Shown here: in pieces, positions 24,912-53,234 of the stretch | Position numbering within the stretch: the stretch's first letter is position 1 | Layout of the letters: each line of letters begins with the position of its first letter | NCBI GenBank assembly: GCA_009103225.1 | Contig: RHPI01000560.1 | Span: 541,465-605,464 of the forward strand | Length of the DNA: 64,000 nucleotides | DNA from: Chlorokybus atmophyticus | Taxonomy: Eukaryota > Plantae > Mesostigma and Chlorokybus algae | Direction of reading: 5' to 3' | Notes under the pieces: generated by a model | What the model was told of the DNA's origin: nothing | What the model saw: the letters and a program-made list of their open reading frames with translations, nothing else | Databases searched by the model: none | Made by a program: the position numbers and the translations under genes

Positions 24912-24999
24912 CTCGCAGTGGCGCAGGAGCGCTAGGTCAATGTACAGTGTACAGTGTACAGTCACATTGTAACGATTGCTACAGCAGGCAACCATTGAA

Positions 25000-27900: not shown

Positions 27901-28448
27901 CAGAACCTGTGCATGCTCTCGTAAGATGTGAACGTGCCACACCAACTAGCGTGCCACGCACCAGGCGCGCCGGCACGCCAATTGCTAGGTATGATAGTAG
28001 AAACATCTACAACAAGTAGACTGCCAGCTTTGCCATCGACAACGCTGTACATGCGAGAATCATCAGCGCTGCCAATCTGCACAGCATGGACAAATGTGCA
28101 CGACTGCAGACACCATCACTTCACGAAATGTGGATGTATCCAATTCGACACCAATGCAACAACTGTTTGTTGAATGGATGCTTAGTCTCAACCAAATAGT
28201 GAACTCAACTCTGCAAGCTAATACAAGCGCATGTAGCTATCAACCACACACAGGCATACACCATCAGCCAGTACCGTGCCGGCAGGGCCCTGGCCCATTT
28301 TGAGCGTAACATTATCCCCAGCAGTGTGCGCAGCGATCAGGGCAGCGCGGAGCTCAGGGGTGAGCCTGAGGGTCATGGCAAAGGGGGCGGCGCCATCTGC
28401 ACCGCAGGCGGCGGGAGGCTGGAGAACCAGCTCATGGGGAAGCTCCAT
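25000..28448 (-). CDS. RNA Pol II elongation factor ELL-like / occludin-ELL domain protein
   Basis: N-terminus FAMTLRLTPELRAAL...VLRIGKETYQF...LQVGTIGKKLHV, central LRNHLLDILAVKP...VLKGIALYRSPGLYHL, and a long Ser/Pro/Lys low-complexity exon. C-terminus GPITSEAQY-HEYVEEYNSKYPTYFRLD...RAARMKAAFNKLHSELE-ILKRHVKSF, which resembles the occludin/ELL helical domain. Confidence 0.75.
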
Positions 28449-28604
28449 TGATCAAGCAGACCTTCGAAATAACCAGGCCCACATCAACTCCCGCACGCCT
28501 CCATCCTCTACATCTCCTCAAACCCCGCCCTCCAGGGCGCCGACGGCTACGCCACCACAACCGCCGCCGCTCAGGGTTTAATTAGTCTTGATGCAAGGCT
28601 TAGG

Positions 28605-28613
28605 AAACCCTAA
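28605..28613 (+). promoter_or_regulatory. Telo-box AAACCCTAA upstream of the ELL-like gene, in the divergent ELL/pLGIC intergenic region
   Basis: Exact plant telo-box ~160 bp upstream of ATG 28448. A function here is inferred only. Confidence 0.45.
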
Positions 28614-29172
28614 TTTACGACCTCGCTATAATGCTAACTTCATGTAAGCACATTGGAGCTGTGTCAAAATCGATTCCTGATACACAACCAAAGACACGTG
28701 GCGCAATGTGATCGCCCGCTTCATGCAAAGCATGACATGAAGCGCTACAATCATTATAGCGTACCTGCTGAATCAGTGCAATGCCGCAGGTTGGTAGCCC
28801 TTTTGCCCCTTTTATGCCCGGCGGCGGGTTCATTCACGACTCCCTGACCGCGCCCGCTTCATGAACGAAACGCGCACACGACCTGAACTTTTTTTGTCGC
28901 TTGCTAATGCCAGTCGCAACCGCCTCTACGAGACCCCTGATTTAGGACCCCTTTAGGACCCCTTTAGCTCAGCGCGTGTGGTCATGAGCCACGTCCTCCG
29001 GCGGCTCAAATGCCAAGCAAAAAGTGATGAATGCAATTGCAGTTTAGTGACCGTCTCGGCTTACCAAACAGTCAAGTGCTGCAACTAGCAAAAACTTCTG
29101 CATGGCGGTGGTAGTGGTGGTGATGGTGGTGGCGGCGGCGGCGAGGTAGCTTCGCGTCTGGGGGGTGAAACT

Positions 29173-32100
29173 ATGCGCATGGAGGGTAGGCTGCTGTGCT
29201 TGCTGGTGCTGAAGCTTCTGGCGCTGGTGGTGTCGGGGTCGGCGTCCTCAAACTCCGCGCAGGGACAGGTATTTTTGGGTGGCTGCTTGTTGCTGTTGCC
29301 ACAAAGCACCTGAAAGGGTTTCTGGTGTTTGGTTCTTATTGCTCAGCATTAACTTACGCGTCATCAATCACAATTATAGACTAGTTGCTGGTTGCTGTTG
29401 AACAATCCATGTGGTAGCAGTTACAGAGGCTGGGAGCAGTGGCCTGTTTGACACAAGCACTGCTGCATACCGCATGCCAAACTCTAGCTACCCAACACTG
29501 TATTTGATTGTTGTATACTGTATGTACAGTAGGCAATGCACCCTTGAGCCGAGCAGTCGACATGATCAAACGAGATCTGGAGCTCAGTCATAGTGTGCAT
29601 GCTGTGGATGTATGCATACACAGCATAAGTTCCATCCATTTAAGCACCATGCGCCATCAACCAACTTGCGCAACACTGCCTGTGCTTGGCAGTCACACTT
29701 GTTGTTGGGGTGCAGGGCGTTTCAAATCCATTCCAGTCACAGGGCGTGCCGCCCAAAGAGTTTTCGCCAATATACGTGTCATTCTACTTGGACCGGCTCA
29801 TAGCCGTAGATGGTAAACAATGATTTGCAAAATAAACTGTCATGCCAGATTCACTTGTTACACAATGGAAGCCTATGCTTGACACAACAACCATACACGT
29901 GCAGATCACCAGTACATATTCGAGGCTGTCACTTACGTTCGCTTCAGCTGGATAGACACTAGAGGTGAGCGTTGTCATCTAAGTTTTTGCTGCTTCTGCT
30001 GCTGCTCTTTTTGTATGTGGTGGTGGTCGTTGACGCTGGTGGGGTTGTTGGTCGTTGTCACGTATGTTGTTGTTGTCGACGTCATTGTTGCTTCTGAGCC
30101 AGTATGGTCCTGCACTTAAGCACAAACCATGTTCAACAGCTGCGGCGTTGTTGTATCCAATCGATCCGAACAACACCGCAGCGTGCACGCGCTCGTGCCA
30201 GAACCTTGTGCCAACGTCGGGCGCAGTTGAAGCCGTATGCTGCGACAGGGTGGGTTTGTATACATGTGGTGCTGACTGAAACAACACACTGACCAAACAT
30301 ACATTTTGTAGATATGGCTTCCCGGCACGAACTTTCGTAATGCTTTCCTCTTCCCCGATGGTCGCACTGAGTCGGAGATTGTGTCACTCGGTGGCGTGAA
30401 CAACTCCGCTGTGCAGTGGCTGAAGGTCCTTCATGGTGAGTGTGTGTTGATGTAGGTATTTGTTGTGTTGGTGTACTCGTACCAAGTAGGCACGCCAACA
30501 CGTTTGTTGTTGGGCAGGTGTGTATTACACGCCGATGTCCTTCCGCAACTTCCCGTTCGATCGGCAGAGCCTTGTGCTCTCGCTGGAGGCGATTGACCAT
30601 GCTGCTCCATACATCGCGTCCTCCATCGGCTCAAAGGTGTGAGCACTTTCAGGTGCAAGGAGGTTTCAATGGGGTTTGAGTTTCAGTTTGATTATGCACA
30701 CCTGGTAGGTTGGTGAGGATGTGATTCAGCGGAGAGGTAATGACCTCTCCAGCTGGCGGGTGCAGCGTGTAAGTACGGTTCAGTACAATCGCTCCCTCAC
30801 AGTCACGCTTCAGGTTGGTGTTATTGTTGTTGCTCTGTTGCTCTCATCATTGTGCGCATTTGCAAATACTCGAGGTGGGTTACCAATCTCACCGGCAGTT
30901 GTCGGTGTGTTTGCGACGTACAGTATGGAACATTCTCGAATGCAGCTGACCCGCTGCCACTGAAGCCCGAGCATGAGGCATTGACGTTTACGTACCCAAA
31001 CTTCGTCATCACGATAGACGTTGTACGGCTTTCCTCGTACTACGTTTACAACATCATCCTGCCAATGTCAATCTGTGTGGCCCTGTCGTGGATCACGTTT
31101 CTCCTATCTGCGGTGAGCGCAGTCAGGATTATGTGCCAAATCAGTACGCTGATGTTGCTGCAAGCATGTCATCACGCATTGCAATGTCGCCATGCATTGA
31201 GATTGTATATGGATCTACCTTACAGTAGCGCTCTGATAGGCGGAGCATGTGGACACGCGGCTGCAGATAGTGGTGACATTGTTTCTGGCGTTGACGGCGA
31301 TGCAGTTTGTCGTGAACGACCAGCTGCCCAAGTCCTCGTACATCACGGCACTGCACATTCAGGTGCCTGTGTGGACACGCGTGTACATCCATGTGCACAG
31401 AAGCGCAAGCACGCATGTTGTGCTTGTGTAGGTGCAATTGAGTTTGTGTTTGTTCGCGCCTGCGGCTGTGTGTTGATGTGTACATGTATTTGCATGTGCA
31501 CGTGCTGGTGTATCTGTAGTTGCACGGTTGTCAAGATGTGGTACCAACTGTTGTGTTACACAGGTGGTCATCTCGTACGCTGCCATCAGCGTTGTCGGGC
31601 TTGAGGGCCTTGCGGTGTACTACCTTACACGCAAGGATATCAAGAAGCGCAAGAATAACGCCCAGGCAATTGCCGCAGAGATGAGCTGGCGCACATTCGC
31701 AAAGAAGTTCCTCGTCAACCCCGCCACAGGCGCTGCTGCCAATGCCGCAAAGTCCATCGGCATCTTCTGGTTGAACACCTCTTCTGCCACCAGCAGGTAA
31801 CCCTTGTGGGCATGCACAAACTACATGCCAGCGTGAACACTACATTGAGCAGAAGTGTGCATATTGCAGTGTGCGCAAGGGTGTACTTACATGCTTGCTA
31901 TACACTGCTTTACTGCCATGGGCTCCATGTACTCCACTGCGTTTGTCTGCATGACTTTGTTGTGCGTGCGCTTGCAAGTGCGTGTGCTTGTACTCATGTG
32001 CAGGTACACGCGCGTGCGCGTGTGTGACGTCTCACAGGTGACTTCTTGCAGGAAAGCAAGGCAGCTGAGCGACAGGTTGAGTTTTCGCCACGGCAGCGAG

Positions 32101-32754
32101 ACCAACTGCGCTTCGGGGACCACTGCGTCAACGTCCAGCGACTTGGTGATTTGCAAAAGGCCCGCAGCCTCGACCGAGGCTGCGGAAGCACACAAGTGGC
32201 GAACACACTCGCCATTGCACAGCAGAGACTCGCAGGGGTGGCCCGGGATAACGGCTGTGTTAGCAGCCTCTGCAGACTCGCACAAACCACATCTGCAGCA
32301 GCAGCAGCATGAGCACCAGTTGTTCCGAACACGCCACCGTCCAGCCATCGAAGGTGAGGACCAGATGGCGTTCGAGATTGAAAGCACACATGATGACGAT
32401 CGCAACAACAGCCACAACATGGCAGCTATGCCGAAGAATTTCTCTTCAACATCCTTGTGCTCGTCGCACCCATTGGTGGCGGGTATGAACCACTGCGATG
32501 ACGATGTGGAGAACCCGCGGAGCCCGCACCCACCTTATCAGCACGCGACGCACACAAGCAAGCACAAAAAGCACCGTGGGTGGCTCGCACGCATGAGGCG
32601 GATACGCGCGCTCGTGCATGAAGACTTCGACTCTGCGCTCGAGACTGTCCACCAACTGGACGTCATCAGCCTCCTCATCCTACCTGTCTTGTATATTGCG
32701 GCCACCATACTCACTTTCACGCTCGATCATGAGCGAGCGAGCTATTCGGATTGA
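29173..32754 (+). CDS. Cys-less (Pro-loop) pentameric ligand-gated ion channel, paralog A, 11 exons
   Basis: Signal peptide MRMEGRLLCLLVLKLLALVVSG; IYVSFYLDRLIAVDDHQYIFEAVTYVRFSWIDTR; CCDR-IWLPGTNFRN; GVYYTPMSFRNFPFDRQSLVL; M1 YYVYNIILPMSICVALSWITFLL; M2 DTRLQIVVTLFLALTAMQFVVNDQLPKSSYIT; M3 VVISYAAISVVGLEGLAVYYL; M4 LDVISLLILPVLYIAATILTF. Splicing stays in frame. Confidence 0.93.
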
Positions 32755-34316
32755 ATTCTTTCCTTGTTCTTAGCTTGGTAAAGCATAGCACAGCATAGTA
32801 CGAACGCGTGCAAAACTGTAGTTGTCAACTACTAGGGGTTGGTATATAGAGTTGGTAGCGAAGCAGGTTTGTTAAATTGAAAGGCGCAAATGTGACATAT
32901 AAGTGTAGCAATGCCTCAAGAGGGATTGAGACAGTATGACAGTCTCATTGCCCAAGCGGAGCTGCAATCTAATAATGCAATCTAGTAACATTCCATACAG
33001 TGCCGCGCAGGCCCCCAACCCTAATATCTGGAGTAAATGAAGCACTGCAGTCCGCAGTGGCCAGCTGCCCAATGGCTTCTGGCTCACTGTGGTCCTCCCG
33101 TGTGTATGTGAGGCGAAGTTGCTGCTCCTTCCTGCTTTGCTGCCCACGCTGCTGAAGGGCCCAGCCAGCTGTTGCCTTGCTTTGATCACTTGCTTGACAG
33201 TAACTACTGCTTGTCCTCCTACACTACACACATACACGCATCTCCTTGGTTTGAGTTGCACAGGTTAGTCTAGCAGTCAGTCAGTCCATGAGTCTTGCCT
33301 ATGCACCGGCGCAAAGCATCGACCCGAGGGTAATGCTAAGCTTCTTATGAACAGCTGCAAGACAAGCGGTGCCCGTTGTGTACATGCTCGTGTTCCAAAC
33401 ATATGAAAGATATGCACGCGTATCGACTTGAAGTCGCGGGAAAAAGATTTTCAAAGACATCCCCACCGTGCACGCGCCTCAAGCAGACGCAAACCTAGCA
33501 ATACAGAAACAAACGTTGTCATCTCGCAAACGCATCGCTGTGCCAGGCAATAGACGCATCAGGCTTATCACAAACAAACTATTGACATCGCGTCGCAAAA
33601 TCATTATAACATGATGATGTTTCCCCTGCCGGCCGATTCAATATTGGCCATGGCCGTGCACCCGAGGATACTCGTTTAGACTGTCGTGGCTCAGTCCACC
33701 GGTAATCTCGATACAGGGACATGAGCATAACGGCCGTCACCATCAGTTGGCGGCCGTCTACAGAAAGGGCCTGACCCTAACCGACCGGTACTTGCCAAAT
33801 ACCCATCAGTCAAGCAAAAGGGACTTAACCTAACCTACTGACAAGTAACTAACTAGTATCTAACAACATAAAGTATCAGCGATTGTACATTGAATGATTG
33901 TGCCTGACAAGTACCTGATGGTGCCTCTATAGTACCGGCCATTATTGTTGTGTACCATGAAAGGTACCTGTTAGTACTGCTTGGTGATGATTATGTATCA
34001 CACAATAATTGTCATCAACTGTGCAAGACGGTGATAAATAATCAATTCTTAATGCCAATAGCAGTTTCTATGCTACAATGTAAACTCCACTGAGCTATTA
34101 CTACTACTGCTAGTACAATCAAGTTACTACTTCTAGTATCACTACCTTTGTACCAAGCTGCCGCTCTTGAACCGCCCGCCACTGGAGCTGGCAGCTCCGC
34201 CGCCGCTGTTCCCGTAAAGCACACAAGGCGGTTAAGGCAATCATATAAGCGCAAACAACAATAACATACACACCTACATGCTGTTGCTTGCCATGTATCG
34301 CCGCCGCCGCCGCCTA

Positions 34317-35820
34317 CACACGGATTGACGTTCAAGGACCATGAATGGTCCGTGACGCAGGACCGGGATTTTCCCCTGCTAAGTGAAATTGACGGACCAT
34401 GTATGGTCTGGCTTTCATGGACAGTCGGACCATGCATGGTCCGGATTTCACGTGAATGGTACCATTGTCCCTTGGTACGGACCACTTATGGTGCGGCCGA
34501 TTACTGTTGCGTCAGGACCAGGTATGGTCCGGCCATCAGACCAGGGACAAAATCATTTAATTACATATTTCAATCATAACTGGTCCGGCTAGCGGACCAT
34601 GGACCGAATTGTATTATGGAACAATGTACATATGAGTGCAAATGCAGTAAAAGTGGAGACATCTTTGCCGGCGGCACCGGCCACGCCCAACCTGCGGCGC
34701 ACGAGGCCGCGGCCAGCTCCGCGGCGTTAGTGGAATTATTAGTCAAGAACACACGCATCATCGGCCGGATTCGAACCCAGTACCTTTAGCATATCAAAGA
34801 CGACGCCCTAGCCACTAAGCTACAAGTGCACGTACCGGTAGGGTCGCATGGCAACCTATATCATATAGTGTATTGCATGCGCCGCTTGGCGACTGTCGGC
34901 CGGCGGCAGTAATTGCCGATGGACAGTCGAAGATTGTCACTTTGATAGGCCCATAGGCTGAGCCCATGCAACTGTAGCATTCATAGGCTGTACCAGTTAC
35001 ATGGACGGTGGCAAACTACATACCGGTAGCCGCGAACTCGGCGGTTGTCAATACGCCAGTACAATTTGTAGACTTGTTAGGGGCTGTCATTGTGACAATG
35101 CTTAGCGATAGTAGCCAAATTGCGACTGTCAATGCAGCCAGTGTACCTTATCGGGCTGTCGATGATTCTGTGGTCGCATGAGGCTTTTATAGGCCATTTA
35201 TGAGGTTATATATTTATATGTATACATATATCCATGTATACATATATAGGCCACAAGTGGACAGCCGCAACTGGTCGGCGGCTGTCAAGTTAAAATGTAC
35301 ATGGACAGCCGGCTGTCAATATACATTGACAGCCGCCGACCATTTGCGACTGTCCAATTTATGGTAAGCGGCGACAGTCGGTGCGGCCTGTCATTTATTA
35401 AATGATGATACACACAATGTACCTATGTACTCGTACATGCAATAACGATACTTCAGTCATGGTACACGTGTAGCGCGCCCTGCAGGGCCGCCAACCAGCA
35501 ACATTGCTGGTCCATGCCGCCCCATACATGGTGCGGCACGGACCATGTACGGTGCGCGGCTGCCGGGCCGCTGAGCCGCGGGCCCACTCCTGGTCCGCAT
35601 CCAGGAACCAGCGTAGAGTACTGGTCCGTGCCGCACCATACAAGGTGCGGCACGGACCATATGTGGTGCGCGACTGCGCGCCAGGTGTTGGGGCCCCAAA
35701 AGAACCATGGACGGTCCGTCCCTCGCGGACCAGACACTCGTGGTCCGCGGGGACGGACCATGTATGGCCCGCGGGGTCCGTGGAAGGACCATGCATGGTC
35801 CCCGAACGTCAATCCGTGTG
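34317..35820. mobile_element. Non-autonomous CACTA/EnSpm(CMC)-like DNA transposon, 1504 bp
   Basis: Left end CTA|CACACGGATTGACGTTCaaGGACCATGaATGGTCC. Right end GGACCATGcATGGTCCccGAACGTCAATCCGTGTG|CTA. This gives a 17-bp perfect TIR, a 3-bp TSD CTA, CAC...GTG termini, and arrays of palindromic GGACCATRYATGGTCC subterminal repeats at both ends. No transposase ORF. Confidence 0.85.
34757..34829 (-). tRNA. tRNA-derived sequence (pseudo-tRNA or SINE head), not a functional tRNA
   Basis: The reverse strand reads gcacttg TAGCTTAGTGGCTAGGGC gtcgtctttgatatgctaaaggtactg GGTTCGAATCC ggcc, with A-box and B-box at tRNA spacing. The acceptor and anticodon stems do not pair. Confidence 0.6.
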
Positions 35821-36302
35821 CTAGCCTTGCCAGGCCTGGCCGCCCTATGGTACAAAGGGTGGCTAGGCTGCCAGCGGTGTTGCGCATAAGACAACGTTAA
35901 ACCATACCGCAATTAAGCTCACCCACTGTTGGCCATTGCCACCGCCGCCGCCGCCACCACCACCGCCGCCACCACCACCGCTGCCGCCGCCGCTGCAGCG
36001 CTGCTAGCCACTGCACAACGCTCACAAGTCACTTGTGTCAAGTGTCAACTTGAATTAAGCCGTTGAGGGTTTGAATTGTTGTTCAAAACACGATGGCACA
36101 ATCATACAATTGCGCCATTGTCGCGATGGGAGCATTGTACTATGTTAATGGTACATTAAATGCATCGTATAAAAGTCACGTCTTGCCGGTAAAACGCAGC
36201 AACAAGTAGAAACTGCCGGTCACTTACTTGTCGCTAAAAGATCGCTGCAGCGCATGACATGCTACGGTTAGGTGAGGACCGACAGTCGGCTGGCACCGTG
36301 CG

Positions 36303-36337
36303 TTATAGTGACTTGTGGTGACCACAAGTCACTATAA
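36303..36337. repeat. Perfect 17-bp inverted repeat with 1-nt spacer
   Basis: ttatagtgacttgtggt-g-accacaagtcactataa. Confidence 0.95.
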
Positions 36338-37494
36338 GGGGACCTGCTTGCCACAACAGACAGGCCGCCGACGGTCAGGGTACAATCAACGGTCGGGCAT
36401 CACTGCAAAATGACGTGCTTGCCATTTCAGGCAAGCCGCCGTTGCTTCTACTATCGACCGTCGATTAGCCGTTAACAGTAGTCCACAATAGTCCAAGGCA
36501 AACCCAACAGTCCAAAAGCGACATGTCAGGCACGGTCAGGCACCCGTCAGTCCCTTGGTCACCGTGTAAAATTTGCAACCAAATGTGCCATAATCAAATA
36601 GTGTACATTATGAATGTTCATGTTTCTACATTTAATCTTGTCACCAACACGAGATTGGTTGACAACATAGTCAAATAACAATGCTGGTAAGAAAAATCAA
36701 GTCGGAGAAGTATTAACACTACGACTTTGAAGATTTATATGTTCTTGTTATCAGCGGGGAGCATTTTCCGGCCGCAAAGTCATTTAACAGCTCCAACTAG
36801 TTGATTTGTGGCAATCCATGTCACATGCGACCAAGTGAAAATGCATTTAATGTTGATGAATCAAGCAATAACCGACATTTGAATTCAGTACGAAACATCG
36901 GTGACATCCAAATTATGCATTGTTAATGAGTCTGTTATGGGTGTTTTATTAACACCACATCGGGGATTGTCATTTGTTGGATGCATTTTACTGGATGCAC
37001 AATGAATGCACAATCCCTAACACGTGCAACGACAATAGCTATGTCGATCAACGACGGAGAAAGGGCTGTCGTCGTCGTTGTGCATGTCGTGGCGGTCGTT
37101 GTCGTTGTGCATGCTGGCGTCAGCCGCAGCTGCTGCCACAACTCCACATCCAATAACCGCCCCTTCTGCACGACAAATGGGGGACATAGGCTGTTGTGGT
37201 GTGTCCCACGCCTGCCTGCTGTTGCTTCTACTAGTTGCATTGCACGTCGCTAGCCCTGCCCTTTAACCAACCCCATAGATTTAACCTAAGAAAGTGATTA
37301 GTTGGGTTGGAGTGGGTTTATGGGCGTGCTGCGTGTGCGTGTGTCTGCTCTGCTTTTGTGCGTGTGCATGTGTGTGCGTAGTATTGTATGTCTGCTCTGC
37401 GTGTGTGTGCGTATGTGTTGATGTGCGTGTGCATGCTGCGCGGTTCCTATATGCTGCATAGTGCTGCCGTAGTAAACCCATTGTTGTACCCCAA

Positions 37495-37893
37495 GGTGTT
37501 AACCATGATTTGTTGGTAAATAATGACGCTGTGCATTAGGTGCTGCGCACCTTTAGAGCCAGGAAAGCCCCAAAGAGTTGTTGGGAGAGCGACTCGCATC
37601 TCTATTCCTCGGAGGAAGACATGCCTTTTAACTGATGAAGCGATTACCAATGTTAACAATTGCAACCATGATGTGGGAAGAGACGCATGCACGGGTTTGG
37701 GTTTGGGTGTTAACCATGATTTGTCAGCAACTGACGACGCATGTGCATTAGGTGCTGCGCACCTTAAGTGCCAGGAAAGCCCCAGAGAGTTGTTGAGAGA
37801 GCGAGGAATAGAGATGCCTTCTATCTTGATGAAACGATTCCTAATGTTAACAATTGCAACCATGATGTGGGAAAAGACGCACGCACGGGTTTG
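37495..37893. repeat. Diverged tandem duplication, unit ~211 bp
   Basis: ggtgttaaccatgatttg...cattaggtgctgcgcacc...ccaggaaagcccc...aatgttaacaattgcaaccatgatgtggg...cacgggtttg occurs at 37495 and 37706. Confidence 0.9.
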
Positions 37894-39089
37894 CAAATAA
37901 CATTTGTACATTCGGCAACTGATGTGGTGCATGCCGGCAATTGTAATGGACTTCAGTGAGTGTGCATTGGATTCTGGCACAACCATTGCGTTAAGTCACA
38001 ACGAGTGCTTTGTGTGTGCACGTAGTCCCTACGCAAAGCGGCTATAAATGCAATAGAGAGGGGATACTTACGAGAAGGTTACCTCTACTTGTTAGTGGAG
38101 GTAAGTGCTGAGGTGGACGCCTGCATCCAGAAGTGCTATACATGCTTCGCCCTACCCCCTATTTCCTTCTCAACACTTGTGGGTGTTCTTAACGTCAAGC
38201 ACATACTGTGTCTCTATGCAGTTCAACAAGATCGGCTATAAAGCTCATCTTGACCAATTCCGTCATCAACTGGATTGTCCAACCAACATTGCAATTGCCA
38301 TGCAAGTAACAGACTGCACGATCACCAATGATCAGCACATGATGCGAAGTGCACTTCCACTTGGTGTTGAGGTGCAATACACGTGTACATGGTTGGCATT
38401 GCAGTGCTAGCAATCATTCTTGCAATAAACCGTCTTGAATCGGCGCGACACGTGGGCTTACAGATGTGGCTATTGTCGTTCTTGTCGATAGCGATGGGGG
38501 TCCTTCCCAATAGATGTGGCTAAATGTTTCAGCACGGAGGTGGAAGCGGTGGCACGGAGGCGAGCATGACCGGTGGTCCGTGAGTGCCTTACATAAGAGT
38601 ATGCAATATGTCAATGTGCTAAGTTTTGGTAGCATAATGCGAAGCTAGGGAACATCTTCCTGTGCAATCGCTGACGTGATGCTAGTTGCATCACAACCCT
38701 GCACGCTTTATTAACTTTATCTTTGTGTACGCATATGATAAAATTCATTATCGGTGTCAGCTGGAATATGTCTCTTGCTATAATCACTACAAGTGCGAGA
38801 TTTGTGTGTTGCCAAAATATTCATTGCAATGGCACGTGTCCTTATTACAATGGCATGTTCCTTCACGTACTGCGTGTTGCGAAAAGTGTTGGCAAAACTT
38901 TGAACCACCGGTATACATGAGAATGGGCAAGTTTGCAAGCTCATTGAAACACATCACTTACATTATTGCGCGAAGCACACTAACAATGCACACTCAAAGT
39001 TTGAGTGTAATCAAGTCTTGACCTTGGTGTCCACAATGTGAAGGAGTGGGTGTTATGAGTTGTAGCTGCCCCAAGCCAATTGCAAGTTG

Positions 39090-39460
39090 ATAGTTGACAC
39101 CATAGTGTCAACTGTCAACTTGTAACATCACCTTCGTAGTAGTTGATACTATGGTGCCAAAAACCACAAAGATGATGCTTCATATAGCATCATCTTTGGC
39201 TGGTATATCAATTACGCATAATGTGGATTACAATATTCCCCTGGATACAAGCTCCCTTGCGTATAAAGATGGGGGGCTTATATATGTAGCATCGTCTTTG
39301 TAGTTGTGGACACTATGGTGTCCACTACTACAAAGACGATGCCACATAGCATCATCTTTGCCTGGGATATTAATTACGCATAATTTGGTTTACAATATTC
39401 CACCGGATACAAGCTCCCTTGCGTATAAAAAAATGGGGTGCTTATATATGTATTACTTGT
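39090..39460. repeat. AT-rich tandem duplication (~170 bp unit) built from hairpins; probable non-autonomous mobile element
   Basis: tagcatcatctttg...aattacgcataat...tacaatattcc...ggatacaagctcccttgcgtataaa...gcttatatatgta occurs twice. A 25-bp stem hairpin lies at 39289-39342. Confidence 0.75.
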
Positions 39461-39563
39461 AAGTGTGCAAACCCCCATTGAGGCCCAGCTGACCTCGCTA
39501 GTTGCATCTGACACGCGTGGTTTGAACTGCACCTTGTGCGCATCAGGTGTAATGCATGCGAAT

Positions 39564-39564
<1 letters not shown>

Positions 39565-39659
<95 letters not shown>

Positions 39660-39660
39660 N
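39565..39660. repeat. Poly-C run (~95 nt) ending in N; length probably unreliable
   Basis: Directly visible; adjacent to an N. Confidence 0.9.
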
Positions 39661-40639
39661 TGTGGGATGAGTCTGTCACTCATACCAAGCGCTTTTGTAA
39701 TGCTGACGTCGAATACCACGGTGGTATTTCGTGGCATGAAATTGGTTGCTTGGTTAATTTATTTGTCTAGGCTAAATAAGTCATGCATTGTTTAACATAT
39801 GCGGTAATGTAGCACGTTAAAAGAAGAGTGCAAGAAGACATTGTTTAGGGAGAATGCAAAAGTATTGCACATATGTTAACAACTAAGTTGGTTATTATTG
39901 CATGTTGTTGGTAGCGAGTGAATTTGCCTATTGGAGGCATTAATTATGTGCTACTTGCCAAGCCATGTGAACTTGTTGGCCATGCATATTGCGACTATAA
40001 AGAAGCCCAACAATTAAGCATATAGCATATAATTGTGCCTAATAAACATAAACACTTGACAGCTCACTCATCTTTTGTGAAGCATTGCGCATTTGAATTT
40101 AAACATACTATATGGAATGTTAAACAACAGCGCGGGCCATACCTGCTCCGACCAAGAGCAGGTATGGCTCGCGCGGTTGAGTAGTCATTACTGTCAAGTC
40201 CGCGCTTTTGTCTGCGACCGCAAATTGCACTTGCAGTCTCCAAATGGTGAAATTACATGCAAAATTACTTGAACATGTATGCATCTGTAAACACTACCGT
40301 AGCTATCAACATTGCCAATATACATGAGAATTACCAAGACTTATCGCAATCATGATTGTAATGATGAGCTACGTTATAGTAAAAGGGATTGTGAAGTATA
40401 ACTTTGTAATACTTGATGGTTTATTACATTTACTTATGATGAATACGTGGTGAACGTACGTCAATTTCCCACATACCCACATGCAGTGAACCACATTCTC
40501 CGAAACAAACGCCACATTTGCGCATGCCGAGAATCTTGGAAGATGTGCCATTGCCCATTGGATATACTATCATTGAATGCATGACATACCGTACGGTCTG
40601 ACACACTGGTGGCACCCTGCTGCCAGCTGGCAGTCACAG

Positions 40640-41670
40640 GAGTGTCGGTCGCTGTGCGTAGGGAATTACTGCTGGCGGGAACGGCGGCGGCGGCGGCGGC
40701 AGTGGTGCGGTGTGGCGTGTATGCGAACGGGCATTGCCGTGGTTGCTGTCATCGAGCTTGGATAGCTTCCTGGTTAGCGGTCGTTTGTTCAAGAACGTTA
40801 GTGGTCAGAAGGGGCGACTGCTGCCCGTAGGACTGCTCTGCTGCCACCACAAGGTTGGAACGGTAGGCCGTATGTGCTTGGGAATTGCGTGTAACACGAG
40901 GCTTCTTTGTTAGCCTGGCAGATCGCTGCACGGTATTCTCATCACTCACGGTCACAAGGAACACACATTGGCTTGCATGGCAGCCAGGTGTCTACAACTT
41001 GTAGACTACAAGTGTGCTTGCTACATGCCTGCTTACGAATTGAGAGCAGGGAGAAGAGATGTTGCTTCGTTGTAATCTGCATTCGTGTGTTAATATCCGC
41101 TCTCTCACTATGTTTGGCATTGATTACGGTGCAAGCACCACGGCAGAGAAGGTTGCGTTGAAAATGCAGTTGTGCAGGGTCTCGTGCTGCCCACTGCCTA
41201 CTTCTCGCAGCCGCCCCTACCACGACGTCAACAGACGCATGGGAAATAAGCTCAGTACAGACTTCGAGCAATGCTGGAGAAGAGGTTTGCATACAGCATA
41301 TGTGGTTGGCAAGTGCGTCGGCAATATATGCATGTATTCGCGTGCATGTACTCATCACCAACTACACTCTTGTGGGAGATCATCACACCACCACCACCAC
41401 CAGCAAGGCGTGTGTGCACTTGCTATCTCTGCTTCCAGCACTTCAACAGTGAAGAAGCTGAAGTATGGCCGCATGTTGCAACTGACTGGAACGTCAGAGT
41501 CTTTGTAACATTGTAACTGTCCTGTTCGGTGCAGGATCAGTTCTACAGCGATGTTGCGCAAGGCGGGGTTGATTTCCTCCACCGAGGCGAACTGCCACCC
41601 AATGTGTTTCCATGCTGAGAGTTCAAAGACCGCATTCGCAACCAACTCTCTTCTATACTGGCACCAGGTA
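40640..41670 (+). pseudogene. Degenerate multi-exon gene remnant of unknown family
   Basis: Exon-like GC-rich blocks with splice signals (for example cag|gatcagttctacagcgat...ctggcaccag|gtaag, encoding DQFYSDVAQGGVDFLHRGELPPNVFPC*EFKDRIRNQLSS with an internal stop). No family recognised. Confidence 0.3.
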
Positions 41671-42975
41671 AGATTGTGCTGAGCCTTTGACTTTGAGTAG
41701 CGAATTGCTTCTCAGCCCCTCGTAACGATAAGCTGGCAGTGTCTGCAGTGTGGCGGAGTTTACAAGTACAGGGCAATGAACTCCAATCCGACCGTGCACA
41801 TCGCGATTGAGATTTGTCTAGGTATGTGTTTTTGGCTTTCACCAGGCCTTGATAAGTAGGGTCCGAGCTTAGAACAATGCATGGTAGTATCAAACAGAGC
41901 GCACACCGTCGAGGACGACATGCATTGTTTCTGACTCAAATATTGCTCAACACTGCACTATGCATAATTATGCATAGTTATCGTCATTGGTGTAAGCAGT
42001 CATATGGACAGTTGGTTTCAGGGCACTGCAGTTGTGACCTGGGCGCTGGTTGGGCACCCATCCCAACGGCCGGTCGATCATGAAGGCCGATGCAGCACCG
42101 GCATGCGAGTAATGTTAAGTGGGGGGAATTGTATGAAACTGAAACGGGACTACAGACGTGCATAGGCGGTCCATATTCAGTGGCAGTGCAGTGTGTGAGT
42201 GGTGTGCATGGTTAACTGAGTGCAGTATGATAGCGTTATCGTCGTGATAGCGAGCATGATGCGCAGAGATATGTACATAGATGTGTTCTGGTGTGCTACT
42301 CTTCAAGTTTAGGGGTAGTTCACCGTAAGATTGCGTATTGTCAATGGGTTTCTTTAGAGTGGGCCACCTTGCACATGTTCATTGCAAAATGGACGGTTTG
42401 TGTTTTTCTGCTGCAGTGCACATGCGTGCAGCAGTAGTTGCGTCATGATGACAGTATTCGACTGCTGCTGCTGTCGCGCAGGGCGCGAGCACATCACCGT
42501 GCCTTTTGATGAGCTGCCTGCCTTACAGAAACCTCTGCTACTGCTGACTGTATGTGTGACATGCCATAGCACACATTCGCATATGCGGGTGTTCGGCAAC
42601 GTTCGATACATGCACGCACACACACAAGCCTCTCGGAGTCGTGGACAAGGCCACATAGAGGCCCAAAGAGATGCGTGTAATGTTTGGTGAGCAAACCAGT
42701 TGCTGCAAGATGCGCAGTAGAAAAGCTAGACGAGCAGCATTGCAACAGCCTGGCGGCTCGAGGTAATTGCACGCAGGGATTGGGAACTGCCACGCAAGCG
42801 ACAAAAGTGTTGTAATTTGGGTCGTATACCACAAATAATCCGTCTCCATGCCCGGTTAAACAACCAACGATAATTATCTACAAGCTAGTGATACAATGTG
42901 TGCACGAAGAACAATATTCGTCAATCAACATATGTACCAATCTACAGTATTGCAACGTTTGTAGTACCCCACAGG

Positions 42976-45900
42976 TCAACTTGGGTAGCTCCCCTGCTCA
43001 TGGTTAAGCACGAACGTGAGAATTGCGGCGCCAATGTAAAGTACTGGCAGGATAAGCAGGCTGAGAAAGTCCAGACGGTTGACCGTCTCAACCGCAGTGC
43101 CAAAGTCTTCATGCACAAGTGTACGTATGCGCATCATACGCGTCAACCACCCGCGGTTCCTGTTCTTTGCATCTGAACAAGAAGCAGGGTTTTCAACATC
43201 GTTGTACCCGTCCTCACCCTTGCTATTGTCGCCGCACATGCTGCTGTTGTTCAGACCCGCCGTAGATGAATGTAAAGAGACCAGCAACGGTGCCGACAAA
43301 TTCTTCGGGACGACTTTTGGTCTGTTGTGGCTGTTGCTGTCGTCGGTGTTGTGGTTATTGTTGTCGTGGTTGTTGCTGTCGTGGTACTGGCTGTTGTTGA
43401 AATCGCCATCTTCACCATGGCTTGCAGGATGAGGTCTTAACCTTGTCTCGCCCTCCGCAACGAGCCCAGGCTGCTGCTGCTGCTCATGTCCGTCTGGCGC
43501 TATACATGATGGCCGAGCCGACACTGCTGAGGGCCATCCATGCTCATGTGTCGATGACGACAACAGCGATGGTGAGTTGGCTTGCCATGGAGGGGTCACA
43601 GTGGCCACCAAGCCGTTTGTTGACGCATTGACCTCAGAGCTGAGCTCCCTTGCTTGTCGGCGAGTCGAGCTCGCCTGCCTCGCTCTCCTGTACACGCGTG
43701 GTAAGGACAGTTTATAAATAAGATAACACGACTGCATTTGTGGCAAATCCAGCAGTCGCTGTTTAATGCTGTTTAAGACACAGTGCAGGATAGGAGACAT
43801 GCAGCAAAGCATGGCAGTACACAGCTCAACACAATGTACATGCGACATCCGTCCAGTTTCAAGTGAGCTGGGGCGTTGCGTGAGCGTTAACTGGCCATTG
43901 CGTGCAAGGGGGGCATACTTGCTCAGGGCGGAGGTCTGCACGAAGAGGGTGCCAATAGAGCGGATGGTGTTGGCGGCGCCTGAGGCGGGGTTGGTGATGT
44001 ATTTTCTCGTCAACCTTCGCCGGTTCAACGCAGCGGCCATCGCCTCTGCGGCGCTCCTCTTGCGCTTCCTCCTGATGTCCTTGCGGGTAAGGTAGTAAAC
44101 AGCGAGGCCCTCCAGCCCCACAACACTGATGGTGGCATATGAGACGACAACCTGGACAGTGAGGACGTTGATACGTAGTCATCACCAGCAACAGCTTGAG
44201 GAACAGACAACACGCACTCGTGCTTGCGCACAGGCACACGTACTCATAGACTCAGTTCACAACGGCACCTGGATGTGCAGTGCCGTAATGTACGACGACT
44301 TGGGCAGCTGGTCATTCACAACAAACTGCATCGCTGTCAACGCCAGGAACAACGTCACCACAATCTGCAGCCGCGTGTCCACATGCTCCTGCAAGCATAA
44401 TTCAAAGGCGGATGTGTACAAATGCCAGCAAGCTGCGCACAGTCTGGAATTATGTTTCAAGACAATGCAGGCACCACAGTATGCGCAGGTTGGTTGCTCA
44501 GAATATGATGCTATGTGTATCTTGTGCACTGCAAGAGTGAGCTACAGTTGCTGGGTCGTGGTTGTAGTGATCAGCAATCAAACAGGTACCCGCTAGGGTA
44601 CGCACTGGATGTGCTTACCATGTCATGGACTACTATATGTTGCCCTGTTCAGTGTTGTGCTCAGGTACATGACAACTGCTGGTCATGCCCAAAGGTACAG
44701 TCTGTTATGGCTGTGATAAGATATGCCACCAATCTAAACCAGCAATCACGCTGCCAACAGCACACGTGACATTGTGTCCAACCGCACAATGACCCAGTCA
44801 GTCACGCGATACTAAATACACTTTTTGGTACTCACCCTTGCAGCACATATGCACAAGACCATTGACAGCACTCACCGCAGATAGGAAGAAAGTAATCCAG
44901 GACATGGACACGCAGAGGCCCATGGGCACGATGATGTTGTAAACGTAGTAGGACGATAACCGCGACACCTCGATGGTGATGACAAAGTTCGGGTAGAAGA
45001 ATGGTGGCATCCCCGCCTCAGGCTTCAGAGGCAGCGGGTCCTCCGGATGCGAGAAGGTCCCGTACTGTGGGGTTTACAACTCTTGTAAGAGCAGTAGAGT
45101 GATAGCTGGGGTTGCAACACCAGGTCACAACAACACACCTCAAGCGTAACAGCCAGGGAGCGATTGTACGCATCCGTGCTCACGCTCTCCACCATCCAGC
45201 TGGAAAGGTCATTACCCCTACGTTCAATTACATCCTCACCGACCTGCAAAGAACAAGCGCATGAGATTGGTGAGAGCAAAGAGAGCCACAGCCATACACA
45301 CAATGGGTAATCAATCTGAACATAATCTGTTTTGATGCAACGGTGCGGCTGTCGATCGCACCTTTGAGCCAATGGAGGATGCAATGTAGGGCGCACGATG
45401 ATCAATGGCCTCCAGTGATATAACAAGGCTCTGTTTGTCGAATGGGAAGTTGCGAAAAGACATCGGCGTGTAGTAGACACCTGTAACAATTACACCTCAT
45501 TGAACAACCCACAATGATGACGTACTCCACATCACTGACAATATCACTATCATTGTTGCCATCACCATCGTCATCATGGTATACACCTACCATGGAGGAC
45601 CTTCAGCCATTGCACTGCGGAGTTGTTAACTCCGCCAACAGTCACAATCTCTGACTCTGTGCGACCATCGGGAAAAACATACGCATTGCGGAAGTTGGTG
45701 CCTGGCAGCCATATCTGCATGGAATGAGAATGGTAGTGAGAGATGTATGCGCTGAAGCTGTTGGAGACATCATGATGCAAACACATCCCACACTTGACAA
45801 GGCCAAACCTTGTCGCAACAAGAGGCCTGTGAGCTGCCTGAATCGGGCACAAGCGTTTGGCAAGGGCGGGTACACGACGCGATGTCAGTCTCATCAACGG

Positions 45901-46941
45901 GGGTGACCAACGCCGCAGCTGTTGAGCAAGCCAGTGGGTTAACAACTATTGGAAAATCTGTGGACAGCTGTATGCAATTTAAGGGCATAATCACAACTGA
46001 CCTCTGGTGTCTATCCAGCTGAAGCGTATGTATGTGACGGCCTCGAAAATGTACTGGTGATCTGCATATATGCATGTGTCTTGTTGGTCCGCAGTGTAAT
46101 GGTACGTCTTCAACCTGTGTGCTCTTACTCATGCGCTATCACATTACCGTCTACGGCTATAAGCCGGTCCAAGTAAAACGTAACGTATATTGGTGAGAAT
46201 TCTGTGGGAGGGACACCCTGCGCCTGGAACGGGACCGAAACCTGGAAGGAAAACAAGCTGCAGCCACTCACTTCTTCCAACACTGTATAGCATGTGATCG
46301 ATGTAGTGACTGTGGTAGTGTTTACAACCAAGAACTCACAACCCATGCGATTGAACTGTAAATGCTGAGTACACATCATGTGATTGCATAGGAAGTGTGG
46401 TTGTACATTCAGCTCACAGTGCTCAACGTACTGTGCTTGCATGCCATGTCCGGTACACAAGTGTCATGAAGAAACCTGCATGAATATATCTTGACACTCT
46501 TTCATTTGTTTCGTTCACTTTGCATTAGCTCCCATGCAAATTAGGGTTTGTAGCATGCAATATATATCTTGACACTCTTCCGTTTGTTTCGTTCACTTTG
46601 CCTTAGCTCCCATGCTGAGTAGTTCGTAGCATGAGCATGCCATGCTCAACTGTGCCCACAGTTGATCATGGCAGACCATGTGCCGGAACAAACACCACTC
46701 GCTGCACCACAGTGCAACCACTGAATGGTGACACAATGGCTTCAACTCAAGACCATGACAAGCAGAAACTGGCAAGCAAGCACGTCAAGCAGTTGCCAGC
46801 GCGCATTTGCTGCTTGCTGCCATGCTGAACCCAACTGCCGCTGGCAGCGCAGCTCACCTGCGCAAGCGCCACAGAGCTTGACAGCAGCAACGACAGCGAC
46901 AAGAAGGTCAACCTCAAGCACCGCAGCCCCCTGCCCGCCAT
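42976..46941 (-). CDS. Cys-less (Pro-loop) pentameric ligand-gated ion channel, paralog B, 11 exons
   Basis: Signal peptide MAGRGLRCLRLTFLSLSLLLSSSVALAQ, with the same exon set and phases as paralog A: SPIYVTFYLDRLIAVD, DHQYIFEAVTYIRFSWIDTR, CCDK-IWLPGTNFRN, GVYYTPMSFRNFPFDKQSL, YYVYNIIVPMGLCVSMSWITFFLS, EHVDTRLQIVVTLFLALTAMQF, LDFLSLLILPVLYIGAAILTF. Stop TGA at 42976-42978. Confidence 0.93.
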
Positions 46942-49260
46942 GCGATCGACCGCGCCAGCTACATCGCCGCCGCAGCCATACGCGAGGACATGCTTACACC
47001 TGGAGTTACCAACAGCCGGTTCGCAACTGGAACCAACTGGCACCAAAACACATCAGGTACGGCGTCTGTTGCTATGCAAAACTCGTTCTATCAGTCAGCA
47101 AAGTTTGAAGTGAACAAATGGGCAACTTGTCAGGCACGGTGAACGGTTTTAGGATATCAATTAGTGTCACAATGGTCAAGAGTAAAGTAAATTTGCCACA
47201 TTTTTACTTACAGCTATCAAGCGGGCCTCGGAGCGCGCTGCTGCGTTCCTGTAGGATGCCTCAGCCACCTGCGGCGGACGTACTGTCAGTACGGTACCGG
47301 TAATGATGGTGCTCAGTCCACCCTCTCTAAGCGAATGTTCTTCATCTTCGGATATTGTCAAGAGCTAATAGCTGGGTAGTTCTCTTGCGTTTGAGAGCAT
47401 GAACGCCAAGAGCACAACATGATAAAGAGCATAACATGATACAAATGTATTACTGCGATGATACCCATCACATCACGCCCATCATGCCATCATGACCATC
47501 ACGCACGTTACGCCTGATACCTTGCCTATCACGCATTATGTCCCATTTATCTGACAACGTGACACACGCTACTCCTTCGACAATGGAATAACGCTCATCA
47601 GCTGGAACTTGCGACAGTAGCTCCTCCCTACCTCGTTGATGTTGGCATAATCTATGTTGTGAGGGGTTATCGCGTCTCCTATCGGGGAGAGAGATCATAC
47701 TTCTCCACCTCTGTGGTGTGGAGGTGGAATAGCTGCAGCTGGGCCTGGACAGGCCTTTATCCCAACGGTTCAACCGTTAACGGGTAGCCATGCAGACGCA
47801 GGACTTTCATTGCAAGCATGAGACTCTGATTATCGTGTGGAACCGTATAAGAGTAACCGAGCTGCCTAACCAGCACTGCTGAACAGCGCATGGAGTGTTT
47901 GCATTGGTGTCATGGGAGGCCATGCTCATGCTCATCATGAGCACGGCCCTGACACGAGATGGTTTCCGTCGCTTTGTTCCGCCGGGTTGTGGTGCACTGC
48001 GTGACAGAAACAATTTCTTGGCCAGCAAGCCTTAGCAATCATGAAAGTGCCAACCACTGTTGCTGAATCGACAAGCGTGCGCATGCATGCCTTTGGCTTC
48101 GTGTACATGCGTGCTGCACTGTACACGCACGCCTACGGCGCACACACACGCCACACATATGCGTGTGCATACTTGCCTGTGAGGACCCAGTTCTCGCAAG
48201 CTACGAATAGCGCACGCACGTGCGAGTATGTGCCTGCGTGCGCGCGCACATGCAAGCGTGCGAGTGGACAGGTGCAAGTGAACATGCGCATGTACAGACC
48301 ACCTGTTCGCACGCAAGCCCCAAAACCTTGGCTTCCGTAACTCTAGCGACTCACTGGCAGCTGCGTGTCTCGGTCTCCTCCTTCGAAGAGAGTCTGCCCG
48401 GGCCTCAGCGGCGATGGTGAGGGATCTGCCCTGGCTGCCTTTGGTGGCGTTGGCCTCAGCCCAGCAGGCGCTGTTTTCCGGCCGCGCGCAGGTCGTTCTT
48501 GAGCACATTCTGCTCAGAGACAGGGGGCCAGCTGCGCCCGGCCTGTGCGCGGTGTGCAGGGCCTTCAATCTCCCCGTGATCGGCGCTGGCCTGCGCAGAG
48601 AGTGAGTCCGAAAGCGCCAGGAGTTGCTCCCTCATCAGCTGCGCCCACTGGCGTTAGGCCCACCTGATAGACATGGGTTCCTGTAGTGACGCCCAGCAAA
48701 ACAGAGATCAAGCAACTTCACCGGCCACTTGGCAAGGAGGGGGTGCGTGGGAGCTGCAGCTCCTGGTTCAATACTCCAAGTCCTCCCTTCAACTTGCGCC
48801 AGCACCTCCACATGCGTTGCCTCGCATCCGTAGGGAGAGACCAGATGAACCAGTCGAGGAATCTGAGACAGCGCTTGCAGCTCTCCATATGCAGGACGGT
48901 GTTGCACCCATCATTAGTCACTGACGACCATCGCGAAGACGCATTGAACAGCACTCTGCTTGCTGCTAGTACACAGAACACATAGGTCACAAGACTGCTG
49001 CATGGAGTGCAGAGTATGTCTAGTCGTGTGTGTTGTTGTGAAGTCGGAGAGAGAAAAGAGTGCATGTGTATATATATGCACTCTGTTTGTGTCACACATG
49101 TACAATGTTTAAGTGTGGCACACACGCAATCGTATGTGGCATATATATTGACCGCAAGCTGCACAGGGCATGCCTATCAAGCCACAGCACCTCTAGGATG
49201 CAAGAACTCAACACAGCAGTCCCTACATTGCACAGACCCACTGCGTACGTCGCTAGCCGC

Positions 49261-51869: not shown

Positions 51870-51965
51870 TTATTATTGTCACGGAGGGCCGGAGGGAAAG
51901 GCGCGTCAGCTTAGTGAGGTTAGAGGTGGATGTGCCTGCGAGCATCGTTGGCAGAGTCATTAACA
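51870..51965 (+). pseudogene. Isolated KH-domain exon fragment
   Basis: LEVDVPASIVGRVINT. The nucleotide sequence agaggtggatgtgcc.gcgagc..c.t.ggcagagtcatt matches 11562-11603, and upstream 51745-51830 matches 11395-11460. Confidence 0.75.
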
Positions 51966-53139: not shown

Positions 53140-53234
53140 AGGGGGTAGACTGTACACAATGTGATACACCACACTGGTTCCAATCGCAGTCCACCTTGGT
53201 CGCAGTCACCATGATAACAACTGTACCACACTTT

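Follow-up and report, generated by a model that had tools for sequence, protein, structure and literature searches.

A 64,000-nucleotide stretch of the genome of Chlorokybus atmophyticus, a streptophyte alga of the class Chlorokybophyceae, carries two paralogous genes for ligand-gated ion channels of the pentameric type (pLGICs) that lie tail to tail. The stretch (hereafter the window, whose first letter is position 1) covers positions 541,465 to 605,464 of the forward strand of contig RHPI01000560.1 in assembly GCA_009103225.1, and the pair sits on scaffold 127 of the C. atmophyticus assembly. Gene 1 reads along the forward strand from an ATG at 29173 and gene 2 along the reverse strand from an ATG at 46941, the two start codons bounding the interval singled out in a preliminary description of the window. 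The stop codons, at 32752-32754 and 42976-42978, are 10,221 bp apart, and no third copy or fragment of the channel was found within the window.

Gene structure

Gene models were built from 11 colinear conserved blocks, obtained by comparing the two halves of the window with each other by tblastx, and their boundaries were then set at GT-AG splice sites. The resulting genes comprise 11 exons each, with GT-AG borders at all 20 introns. Exon lengths are 96, 97, 60, 110, 124, 119, 105, 189, 123, 233 and 703 nt in gene 1 and 84, 94, 60, 110, 124, 119, 105, 189, 120, 233 and 712 nt in gene 2; seven of the 11 are equal between the genes and the other four differ by multiples of three, and therefore all ten introns share position and phase. 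Neither gene model contains an in-frame stop or a frameshift.

These models agree with public records. Gene 2 matches eukprot entry jgi/Chlat1/1688 at 100% identity and 100% coverage, and gene 1 equals jgi/Chlat1/1687 when exon 11 starts at the acceptor at 32052. An acceptor at 32004 is also in phase, and we dropped it in favor of 32052, which the annotation uses and which is homologous to the gene 2 acceptor. Both genes are thus already publicly annotated, with precomputed Pfam pLGIC domains. The preliminary description had proposed two intact, tail-to-tail paralogous pLGIC genes in an alga with identical exon phases; colinear 11-exon models with Pfam domains, no disabling changes and ten of ten introns in common bear this out.

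Table 1. Coordinates of the channel genes, their diagnostic segments and the enclosing duplication (window positions)
Feature	Position	Strand	Basis or remark
pLGIC gene 1 (JGI Chlat1/1687, Chrsp127S01916, P0002, 652 aa)	29173..32754	+	Paralogue tblastx and GT-AG splice modelling; Pfam PF02931, PF02932
Gene 1 exons	29173-29268, 29716-29812, 29905-29964, 30140-30249, 30312-30435, 30518-30636, 30709-30813, 30924-31112, 31240-31362, 31564-31796, 32052-32754	+	
Gene 1 exon 4, four-cysteine insertion, ..AACTRSCQNLVPTSGAVEAVCCDR, then IWLPG	30140..30249	+	Family column counts
Gene 1 β6-β7 Pro-loop, VYYTPMSFRNFPFDRQ	30520..30567	+	Translation; ELIC alignment FRLFPFDRQ; column counts
Gene 1 exon 9: M1-M2 linker, M2, M2-M3 linker (AEHVD(-2')T R(0')LQ(2')IVVT(6')LFL(9')ALTA(13')MQF(16')VVND QLPKSSY)	31240..31362	+	100% amino-acid identity between paralogues
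pLGIC gene 2 (JGI Chlat1/1688, Chrsp127S00093, P0001, 649 aa)	42976..46941	-	Splice model, Pfam, AlphaFold2 model, Foldseek matches
Gene 2 exons	46941-46858, 46241-46148, 46061-46002, 45918-45809, 45714-45591, 45480-45362, 45243-45139, 45064-44876, 44388-44269, 44151-43919, 43687-42976	-	
Gene 2 exon 4, four-cysteine insertion, ..ASCTRPCQTLVPDSGSSQASCCDK, then IWLPG	45809..45918	-	Cys95, Cys99, Cys113, Cys114 (P0001)
Gene 2 Pro-loop, VYYTPMSFRNFPFDKQ	45431..45478	-	Translation, column counts
Gene 2 exon 9: M2 pore helix and M2-M3 linker	44269..44388	-	Paralogue comparison
Left arm of inverted segmental duplication	11984..32744		Inverted repeats, colinear blastn blocks, tblastx conserved frames
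Right arm of inverted segmental duplication	42986..55625		Inverted repeats, colinear blastn blocks
10.2-kb spacer between stop codons	32755..42975		Lower GC (46-48%), local repeats

Superfamily membership and fold

Both proteins match Neur_chan_LBD (PF02931) and Neur_chan_memb (PF02932) above the curated Pfam cut-offs. Each has a full extracellular domain (ECD), four membrane-spanning segments (M1-M4) and a loop of about 230 residues between M3 and M4, and the N-termini appear signal-peptide-like, being hydrophobic and aligning with those of the family. According to a 2016 survey, the Pro of the [F/Y]-P-x-D motif at the tip of the β6-β7 loop is the sole absolutely conserved residue of the pLGIC superfamily, and Table 1 of that survey adds as conserved the β9 Trp, the pre-M1 Arg that pairs with the loop Asp in a salt bridge, the kink Pro of M1, the M2-M3 Pro, a basic residue at 0' and Leu 9' (Jaiteh, Taly and Henin 2016, PMC4795631). 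All of the tabulated residues are found in both paralogues. The motif reads F-P-F-D in each gene, and in an alignment of 59 family sequences its Pro column is invariant (59/59). Among the other positions (numbered, here and below, as in P0001, the gene 2 protein), R267 before M1 is conserved in 58/59 sequences, P279 of M1 is invariant, P324 of the M2-M3 linker is kept in 57/59 and W213 of β9 is nearly invariant, with R301 (0') in 59/59 and L310 (9') in 57/59 in M2. By domains, motif, coupling residues and M2, sequence comparison places both predicted proteins in the pLGIC, or Pro-loop, superfamily.

Structure-based comparisons lead to the same place. Among solved structures the best sequence match is the bacterial channel ELIC (2vl0, E = 2.8e-14), then the prokaryotic channel GLIC, and then the transmembrane domains (TMDs) of GABA-A and GlyR; a family-profile search pointed the same way and turned up no closer solved relative. 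An AlphaFold2 (AF2) model computed from the 59-sequence family alignment has a mean predicted local distance difference test score (pLDDT) of 71.9, exceeding 90 in most β-strand and transmembrane blocks, and shows a β-sandwich and four helices (269-291, 298-322, 331-388 and 608-644), with the M3-M4 loop (about 390-590) disordered. A model from a 6-sequence alignment was discarded at a pLDDT of 50. When the model was searched against the PDB with Foldseek, every top match listed was a pLGIC, with target-normalised TM-scores of 0.65-0.69 (ELIC, GLIC and GABA-A chains). The two Pfam domains and the modelled strands and four helices agree with the preliminary description's claim of a full ECD and M1-M4, and its likeness to GLIC and ELIC holds as well, since loop and M2 are closest to these two among solved structures.

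The resemblance to ELIC and GLIC is confined to loop and pore sequence. ELIC (Erwinia/Dickeya chrysanthemi; PDB 2vl0, 2yn6) shares an FR(N/L)FPFDRQ loop, the R0'-L-Q2'...T6'...L9'...A13'...F16' pattern, the absence of Cys-loop cysteines and a TM-score of 0.67-0.69, but it is bacterial and intronless, with a very short M3-M4 linker, no four-cysteine insertion (below) and about 20% overall identity. GLIC (Gloeobacter violaceus; PDB 3eam, 4hfi) has the same fold by Foldseek and, like the Chlorokybus pair, no Cys-loop cysteines, an acidic -2' and an L-P-K-(T/S)-(P/S)-Y M2-M3 linker; it differs in being prokaryotic and proton-gated, in having neither an intracellular domain nor the cysteine insertion, and in matching more weakly than ELIC (E about 1e-9). 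Prokaryotic channels of this type have about 310-320 residues, a very short M3-M4 linker and no introns, whereas the Chlorokybus proteins have 649 and 652 residues, a loop of about 230 residues and ten spliceosomal-type introns. Between M3 and M4 they have an intracellular domain of eukaryotic type, a long disordered loop in which an Arg-rich helix precedes M4. Animal Cys-loop receptors (nAChR, 5-HT3, GABA-A, GlyR, GluCl) share the superfamily architecture, a long M3-M4 domain with a helix before M4 and, for GABA-A and GlyR, TMD profile matches; they differ in their disulfide-bonded 13-residue Cys-loop, absent from the Chlorokybus pair, whose cysteines lie in a family-specific insertion.

Cys-loop positions and a four-cysteine insertion

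In both genes the β6-β7 loop reads H-G-V-Y-Y-T-P-M-S-F-R-N-F-P-F-D-(R/K)-Q-S-L. Thr162 and Leu176 occupy the Cys-loop cysteine positions, and across the family the first of these columns holds Thr, Gln, Ser, Asn or Ala and the second Leu in 58/59 sequences. The pair of cysteines 13 residues apart that distinguishes animal-type Cys-loop receptors is missing, and with it the corresponding disulfide. The preliminary description had read this loop correctly, as G-V-Y-Y-T-P-M-S-F-R-N-F-P-F-D-x-Q without a Cys pair, x being Arg or Lys. Its term "Cys-less" is right for the Cys-loop pair, replaced by Thr and Leu, but wrong for the ECD overall, which has four family-invariant cysteines.

These cysteines lie in an insertion of about 40 residues, encoded by exon 4, between β2 (FSWIDTR) and loop A (IWLPG). 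Both genes carry its signature, C-x3-C...C-C-D-x-[IVL]-W-x-P, which was derived in this analysis. Each of the four columns is Cys in 58/59 family sequences, the two exceptions being gapped models, and the insertion is missing from two prokaryote-like outgroup sequences. It goes unmentioned in the conserved-motif section of the 2016 survey (PMC4795631). The most economical reading is that the four cysteines probably form two disulfides that staple a hairpin; counting against this pairing, the insertion is modelled by AF2 at low confidence (pLDDT 56-67). Further motifs found throughout the clade are P-[FL]-x-G-Q-G at the N-terminus, immediately behind the signal-like segment, G-D-D-x-S-G-W before β9 and D-P-x-P in loop C.

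Pore and ligand site

Numbered by the ELIC alignment and the L-P-K linker, M2 has Asp at -2', Thr at -1', Arg at 0', Leu at 1', Gln at 2', Thr at 6', Leu at 9', Ala at 13', Phe at 16', Asn at 19' and Asp at 20'. Its R-L-Q...T...L...A...F pattern is that of ELIC, which is cation-selective. The pore is most likely cation-selective too, because acidic rings at -2' and 20' would line it and a Pro-Ala-Arg motif is lacking. Three features pull the other way: -1' is Thr and not the Glu of classical cation channels, Arg at 0' occurs in cation and anion channels alike, and -2' varies across the family (Asp, Glu, Gly or Ala). With the -1' Glu missing and -2' variable, these residues argue only moderately or weakly for cation selectivity.

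An anion-selective channel, or one that responds not to a small extracellular ligand but, for instance, to protons or to redox chemistry at the cysteine module, strikes us as unlikely. Arg 0' next to Thr -1' without the classical -1' Glu, the variation at -2', the proton gating of GLIC as a close structural match, and four invariant extracellular cysteines that could be redox-sensitive would all suit such a channel. Set against them are the net negative rings that Asp -2' and Asp 20' would form at both pore mouths, the absence of the P-A-R motif of anion channels and the match of the M2 pattern to that of cation-selective ELIC. The class of agonist cannot be read from the ligand site, because the ELIC agonist contacts are replaced (loop-B Phe133 by Ile, Arg91 by Ser), a substitution that also counts against the model given below.

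Relatives in the green lineage

A HMMER profile of the family, run against 1.84 billion representative sequences, retrieved 144 proteins at E <= 1e-30. A homologue search with the full-length alignment had returned the input proteins alone, probably owing to low-complexity M3-M4 words, and a loop-trimmed alignment did better. Named relatives include the chlorophytes Chlorella, Micractinium, Parachlorella, Picochlorum, Botryococcus, Myrmecia, Gonium, Raphidocelis, Monoraphidium, Tetraselmis and Chloropicon and the ulvophyte Neomeris; four gene models of one streptophyte, Spirogloea muscicola (Zygnematophyceae); and one holozoan protein, CFRG7252T1 (P0035) of the ichthyosporean Creolimax fragrantissima. 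On this sequence evidence the Chlorokybus pair is assigned to a green-lineage clade of Cys-loop-less pLGICs.

The chlorophyte Cys-less pLGICs (PMC4795631; CHLNCDRAFT_137328 and CHLNCDRAFT_133508 of Chlorella variabilis, PRW60468.1 of Chlorella sorokiniana and a "ligand-gated ion-channel protein" of Chloropicon primus) match the profile at E down to 1e-117 and below. They share with the Chlorokybus pair the P-[FL]-x-G-Q-G motif, the four-cysteine insertion, the FPFD loop without flanking Cys, D-P-x-P in loop C, the M2 consensus LDTRLxxVVTLFLALTAxQFV and a long M3-M4 loop; they differ in their chlorophyte hosts, in showing 30-37% identity and in having no inverted duplicated pair. The Spirogloea models (SM000062S19953 / SM000023S07568 and SM000171S03221 / SM000042S15392, predicted pLGICs) are streptophyte-algal and carry the four cysteines, and SM000062S19953 (P0034) has, like the Chlorokybus pair, GG-x(0-2)-NN-(S/T) in the β5 region, which most chlorophyte sequences lack. 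They are about 35% identical to the pair, and their grouping with it is without bootstrap support.

We take the duplication to be lineage-specific, since identity to the nearest protein outside Chlorokybus does not exceed 37% and a neighbour-joining (NJ) tree joins the two copies with 100% bootstrap. The pair falls near Spirogloea, the eukprot transcript P0028 and a metagenomic sequence at bootstraps of 8-29%; the grouping of Spirogloea with the pair has 18% with the metagenomic sequence (P0003) and 8% without it. Vertical descent within Streptophyta is plausible from these sequences. Origin by horizontal transfer from bacteria was rejected, because the genes have introns and encode a long intracellular loop and because their nearest relatives are eukaryotic.

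Two further members deserve separate mention. The Creolimax protein, in an otherwise green-algal clade, keeps the four-cysteine insertion and a VTLFLALTALQFV M2 helix and takes a basal position within the ingroup of the NJ tree; given this member, the clade may be older than Viridiplantae or may have been transferred. Metagenomic P0003 is encoded by one uninterrupted open reading frame (ORF) at 1436-3124 of the 5.7-kb ENA contig k141_906846, beside a UAA/EamA transporter gene, where the Chlorokybus genes have ten introns.

An old duplication with both copies under constraint

A repeat search of the whole window revealed that inverted homology extends well beyond the channel genes. Colinear blastn blocks are 68-91% identical, and the outer ones (11984-16917 against 55625-48940) are 71-81% identical in DNA, comprising a block of 2.2 kb at 77% (11984-14131 against 55625-53537) and a second pairing 14727-16917 with 50401-48940. 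The channel pair is the inner part of a larger colinear inverted segmental duplication. Frames free of stops are kept in the outer blocks of both arms by tblastx, although none matches Pfam.

We used the Nei-Gojobori method on the paralogue codon alignment to estimate synonymous divergence (dS) and its ratio to nonsynonymous divergence (dN/dS). dN/dS is 0.108 in the ECD (dS 1.21), 0.086 in M1-M3 (dS 0.70), 0.364 in the M3-M4 loop (dS 1.51), 0.136 in the pre-M4 segment plus M4 (dS 1.42) and 0.113 in ECD plus TMD together (dS about 1.05). Tajima relative-rate tests against 8 outgroups were in no case significant, and rates are symmetric. Exons are 67-93% identical in nucleotides, and intron lengths diverge, with 127 against 487 nt as one example; where alignable, most introns are at most about 70% identical. 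From symmetric rates, high dS and low dN/dS it follows that the duplication is old, that both copies are constrained and that neither is decaying: both are under purifying selection and they are not haplotypes. The preliminary description had proposed dN/dS by domain as a check, with a value near 1 or a haplotype artefact as grounds for giving up its view; the values of about 0.1 in ECD and TMD remove the first concern, and dS of about 1, together with the differing lengths and limited identity of the introns, excludes the second.

Divergence is uneven along the proteins. M2 and the M2-M3 linker are 100% identical between the paralogues, the ECD about 80% and the M3-M4 loop 40%. Amino-acid differences concentrate in the cysteine-rich insertion (16/37, 43%), the most diverged segment of the ECD, and in loop C (10/28, 36%), and there are none in β5'-β6, M2 or the M2-M3 linker. 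This is the pattern of conserved pore and divergent ECD positions and M3-M4 loops that the preliminary description had reported. The M2 exon is also 91-93% identical in nucleotides, with all 9 differences synonymous and a proportion of synonymous differences (pS) of 0.30, against about 0.58 in other exons (binomial p ~0.002). Past gene conversion between the inverted copies, or synonymous constraint, are possible causes. The similarity of this exon reaches about 14 nt into the downstream intron (31240-31376 and 44255-44388).

A model for the channel pair

Taken together, we favor the reading that the two genes encode functional, Cys-loop-less eukaryotic pLGIC subunits, that an inverted segmental duplication produced the pair long ago in the Chlorokybus lineage and that purifying selection has since kept both copies. 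To this explanation as a whole, mechanism included, we give a probability of roughly 0.8. Each subunit would be secreted into the plasma membrane and would assemble as a pentamer, and an extracellular agonist would bind at subunit interfaces. Binding would be transmitted by ECD-TMD coupling, through the Asp of the FPFD loop and the pre-M1 Arg as a pair and through the M2-M3 Pro, to open an ELIC-like pore (Asp -2', Arg 0', Gln 2', Thr 6', Leu 9', Ala 13', Phe 16') that is most likely cation-selective. Two observations tell against parts of this account: an exact-sequence lookup of the gene 2 protein in assemblies gave no match in any transcript-derived contig, and the exact spacing of the genes depends on the join at the N at 39660, within the spacer.

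How the subunits would combine bears on why both were retained. Separate homopentamers, subfunctionalised in agonist sensitivity, M3-M4 regulation or expression, are a fair prospect that we hold at somewhat under even odds. ELIC and GLIC, the closest solved relatives, are homopentamers; the M3-M4 loops have diverged to 40% identity at a dN/dS of 0.36; and loop C, a substitution hotspot here, belongs to the principal ligand-binding face in known pLGICs, although such hotspots also fall in the surface loops under least constraint.

The preliminary description had taken the retention of both copies to suggest heteropentamers or ligand diversification in an algal chemosensory system; the heteropentamers and the chemosensory role are speculative. 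Retention turns out to be weak evidence for heteropentamers or ligand diversification: the duplication that encloses the pair is conserved in its outer parts as well, and because the sequence around the channel genes has also been retained, the case for heteromerisation from retention by itself is weakened. Obligate co-assembly into heteropentamers, as the reason why both copies persist, seems to us improbable, though several features would fit it. The copies share identical pore and coupling elements, at 0% difference in M2 and M2-M3, while peripheral ECD loops differ, by 36% in loop C and 43% in the cysteine-rich insertion; evolutionary rates are symmetric; and the low synonymous divergence of the M2 exon would keep the pore uniform. 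Yet ECD identity of about 80% fits homomers equally, family members elsewhere in algae are single, divergent genes, and retention is not specific to the channels.

That one copy is silent or decaying, or that the pair is an assembly or haplotype artefact, we consider very improbable: the palindrome with a poly-C run and N between its arms (39565-39660) is error-prone for assemblers and no transcript-derived record of either protein was found, but dS is about 1 with exons 67-93% identical and introns unlike in length and mostly at most about 70% identical, both ORFs are intact with canonical splice sites, dN/dS is about 0.1 with symmetric relative rates, and the arms differ by a 10-kb indel.

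Chlorokybus is among the earliest-diverging streptophyte lineages. With members in chlorophytes as well as in Chlorokybus and Spirogloea, the family was kept in streptophyte algae, whereas it is reportedly missing from land plants. Cys-less pLGICs have been reported in protists including Chlorophyta, with none in multicellular plants (Jaiteh, Taly and Henin 2016, PMC4795631); a 2024 review describes land plants as without pLGICs and places the loss in the streptophyte lineage (PMC11085791), and Zygnematophyceae are the class viewed as nearest to land plants among the algae (PMC4873514). The intact, selectively maintained Chlorokybus copies and the Spirogloea homologues narrow the window in which that loss occurred. 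As a more far-reaching and tentative proposal, which we think rather unlikely as a whole, the four-cysteine insertion would be a two-disulfide module that defines a distinct eukaryotic pLGIC subclass, stabilising the ECD or sensing ligand or redox state in replacement of the Cys-loop disulfide, and, with the family still present in Chlorokybus and in Zygnematophyceae (Spirogloea), the ancestors of land plants among the algae would have retained fast pentameric ligand-gated channels that were lost only at or after the origin of embryophytes.

Full-text searches of an incomplete library returned no paper linking pLGICs or Cys-loop receptors to Chlorokybus or streptophyte algae, and none that examined the function of a green-algal pLGIC. 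With a family description dating from 2016 and both genes in public annotation, the pair is a new duplicated member that leaves current views in place. Relative to the preliminary description, the present analysis adds three points of modest value. These are that the family occurs in streptophytes, Spirogloea among them, that its four-cysteine insertion is invariant, and that the pair lies in a palindromic segmental duplication in which the pore exon may have undergone gene conversion. The pair offers tractable candidates for a first functional study of a green-lineage pLGIC, and the conserved insertion is a concrete, testable structural feature of the clade.

Surroundings of the channel genes

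In the spacer between the genes, 39121-39660 comprises two copies (84%) of a 162-bp tandem repeat and, after them, a perfect poly-C run of 95 nt that ends in one N (39565-39660), and the poly-C/N at 39660 may be an assembly join. A Pfam scan of the ten longest ORFs of the spacer found no protein family; the one line returned, for ABC_toxin_N, stayed below threshold (E = 0.077, 13 bits where the cut-off is 27) and was taken as chance.

Both arms of the duplication contain a Gly/Ala-rich ORF predicted to be membrane-like, at 15303-15830 (+) and 49296-49832 (-). Around it (15303-16424 and 49175-49832) the arms reach 86% identity in parts, and in the left arm the Gly/Ala-rich ORF lies in a tandemly duplicated unit of about 600 bp (15414-15773 and 16051-16376). 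An Ifi-6-16-type identity, considered for the Gly/Ala-rich ORFs, is not claimed, there being no Pfam match. The left-arm stretch 16917-29728 (12.8 kb) has no counterpart in the right arm, where the corresponding interval measures 2.7 kb; either the left arm gained an insertion or the right arm underwent a deletion. Several long ORFs of this left-arm stretch (for example 18041-18934, 20916-21851 and 25458-26546) have no Pfam matches, and the stretch includes an assembly gap at 19264-19536.

Outside the duplication, 7335-7800 is a long microsatellite-like array of 8-bp period with an N at 7493, near an assembly gap of 195 N at 8651-8845. An ORF at 59612-60418 (-) carries a WSD (Williams-Beuren syndrome DDT, D-TOX E) motif (E = 5.6e-12) and is probably an exon of a chromatin-remodelling-associated gene.

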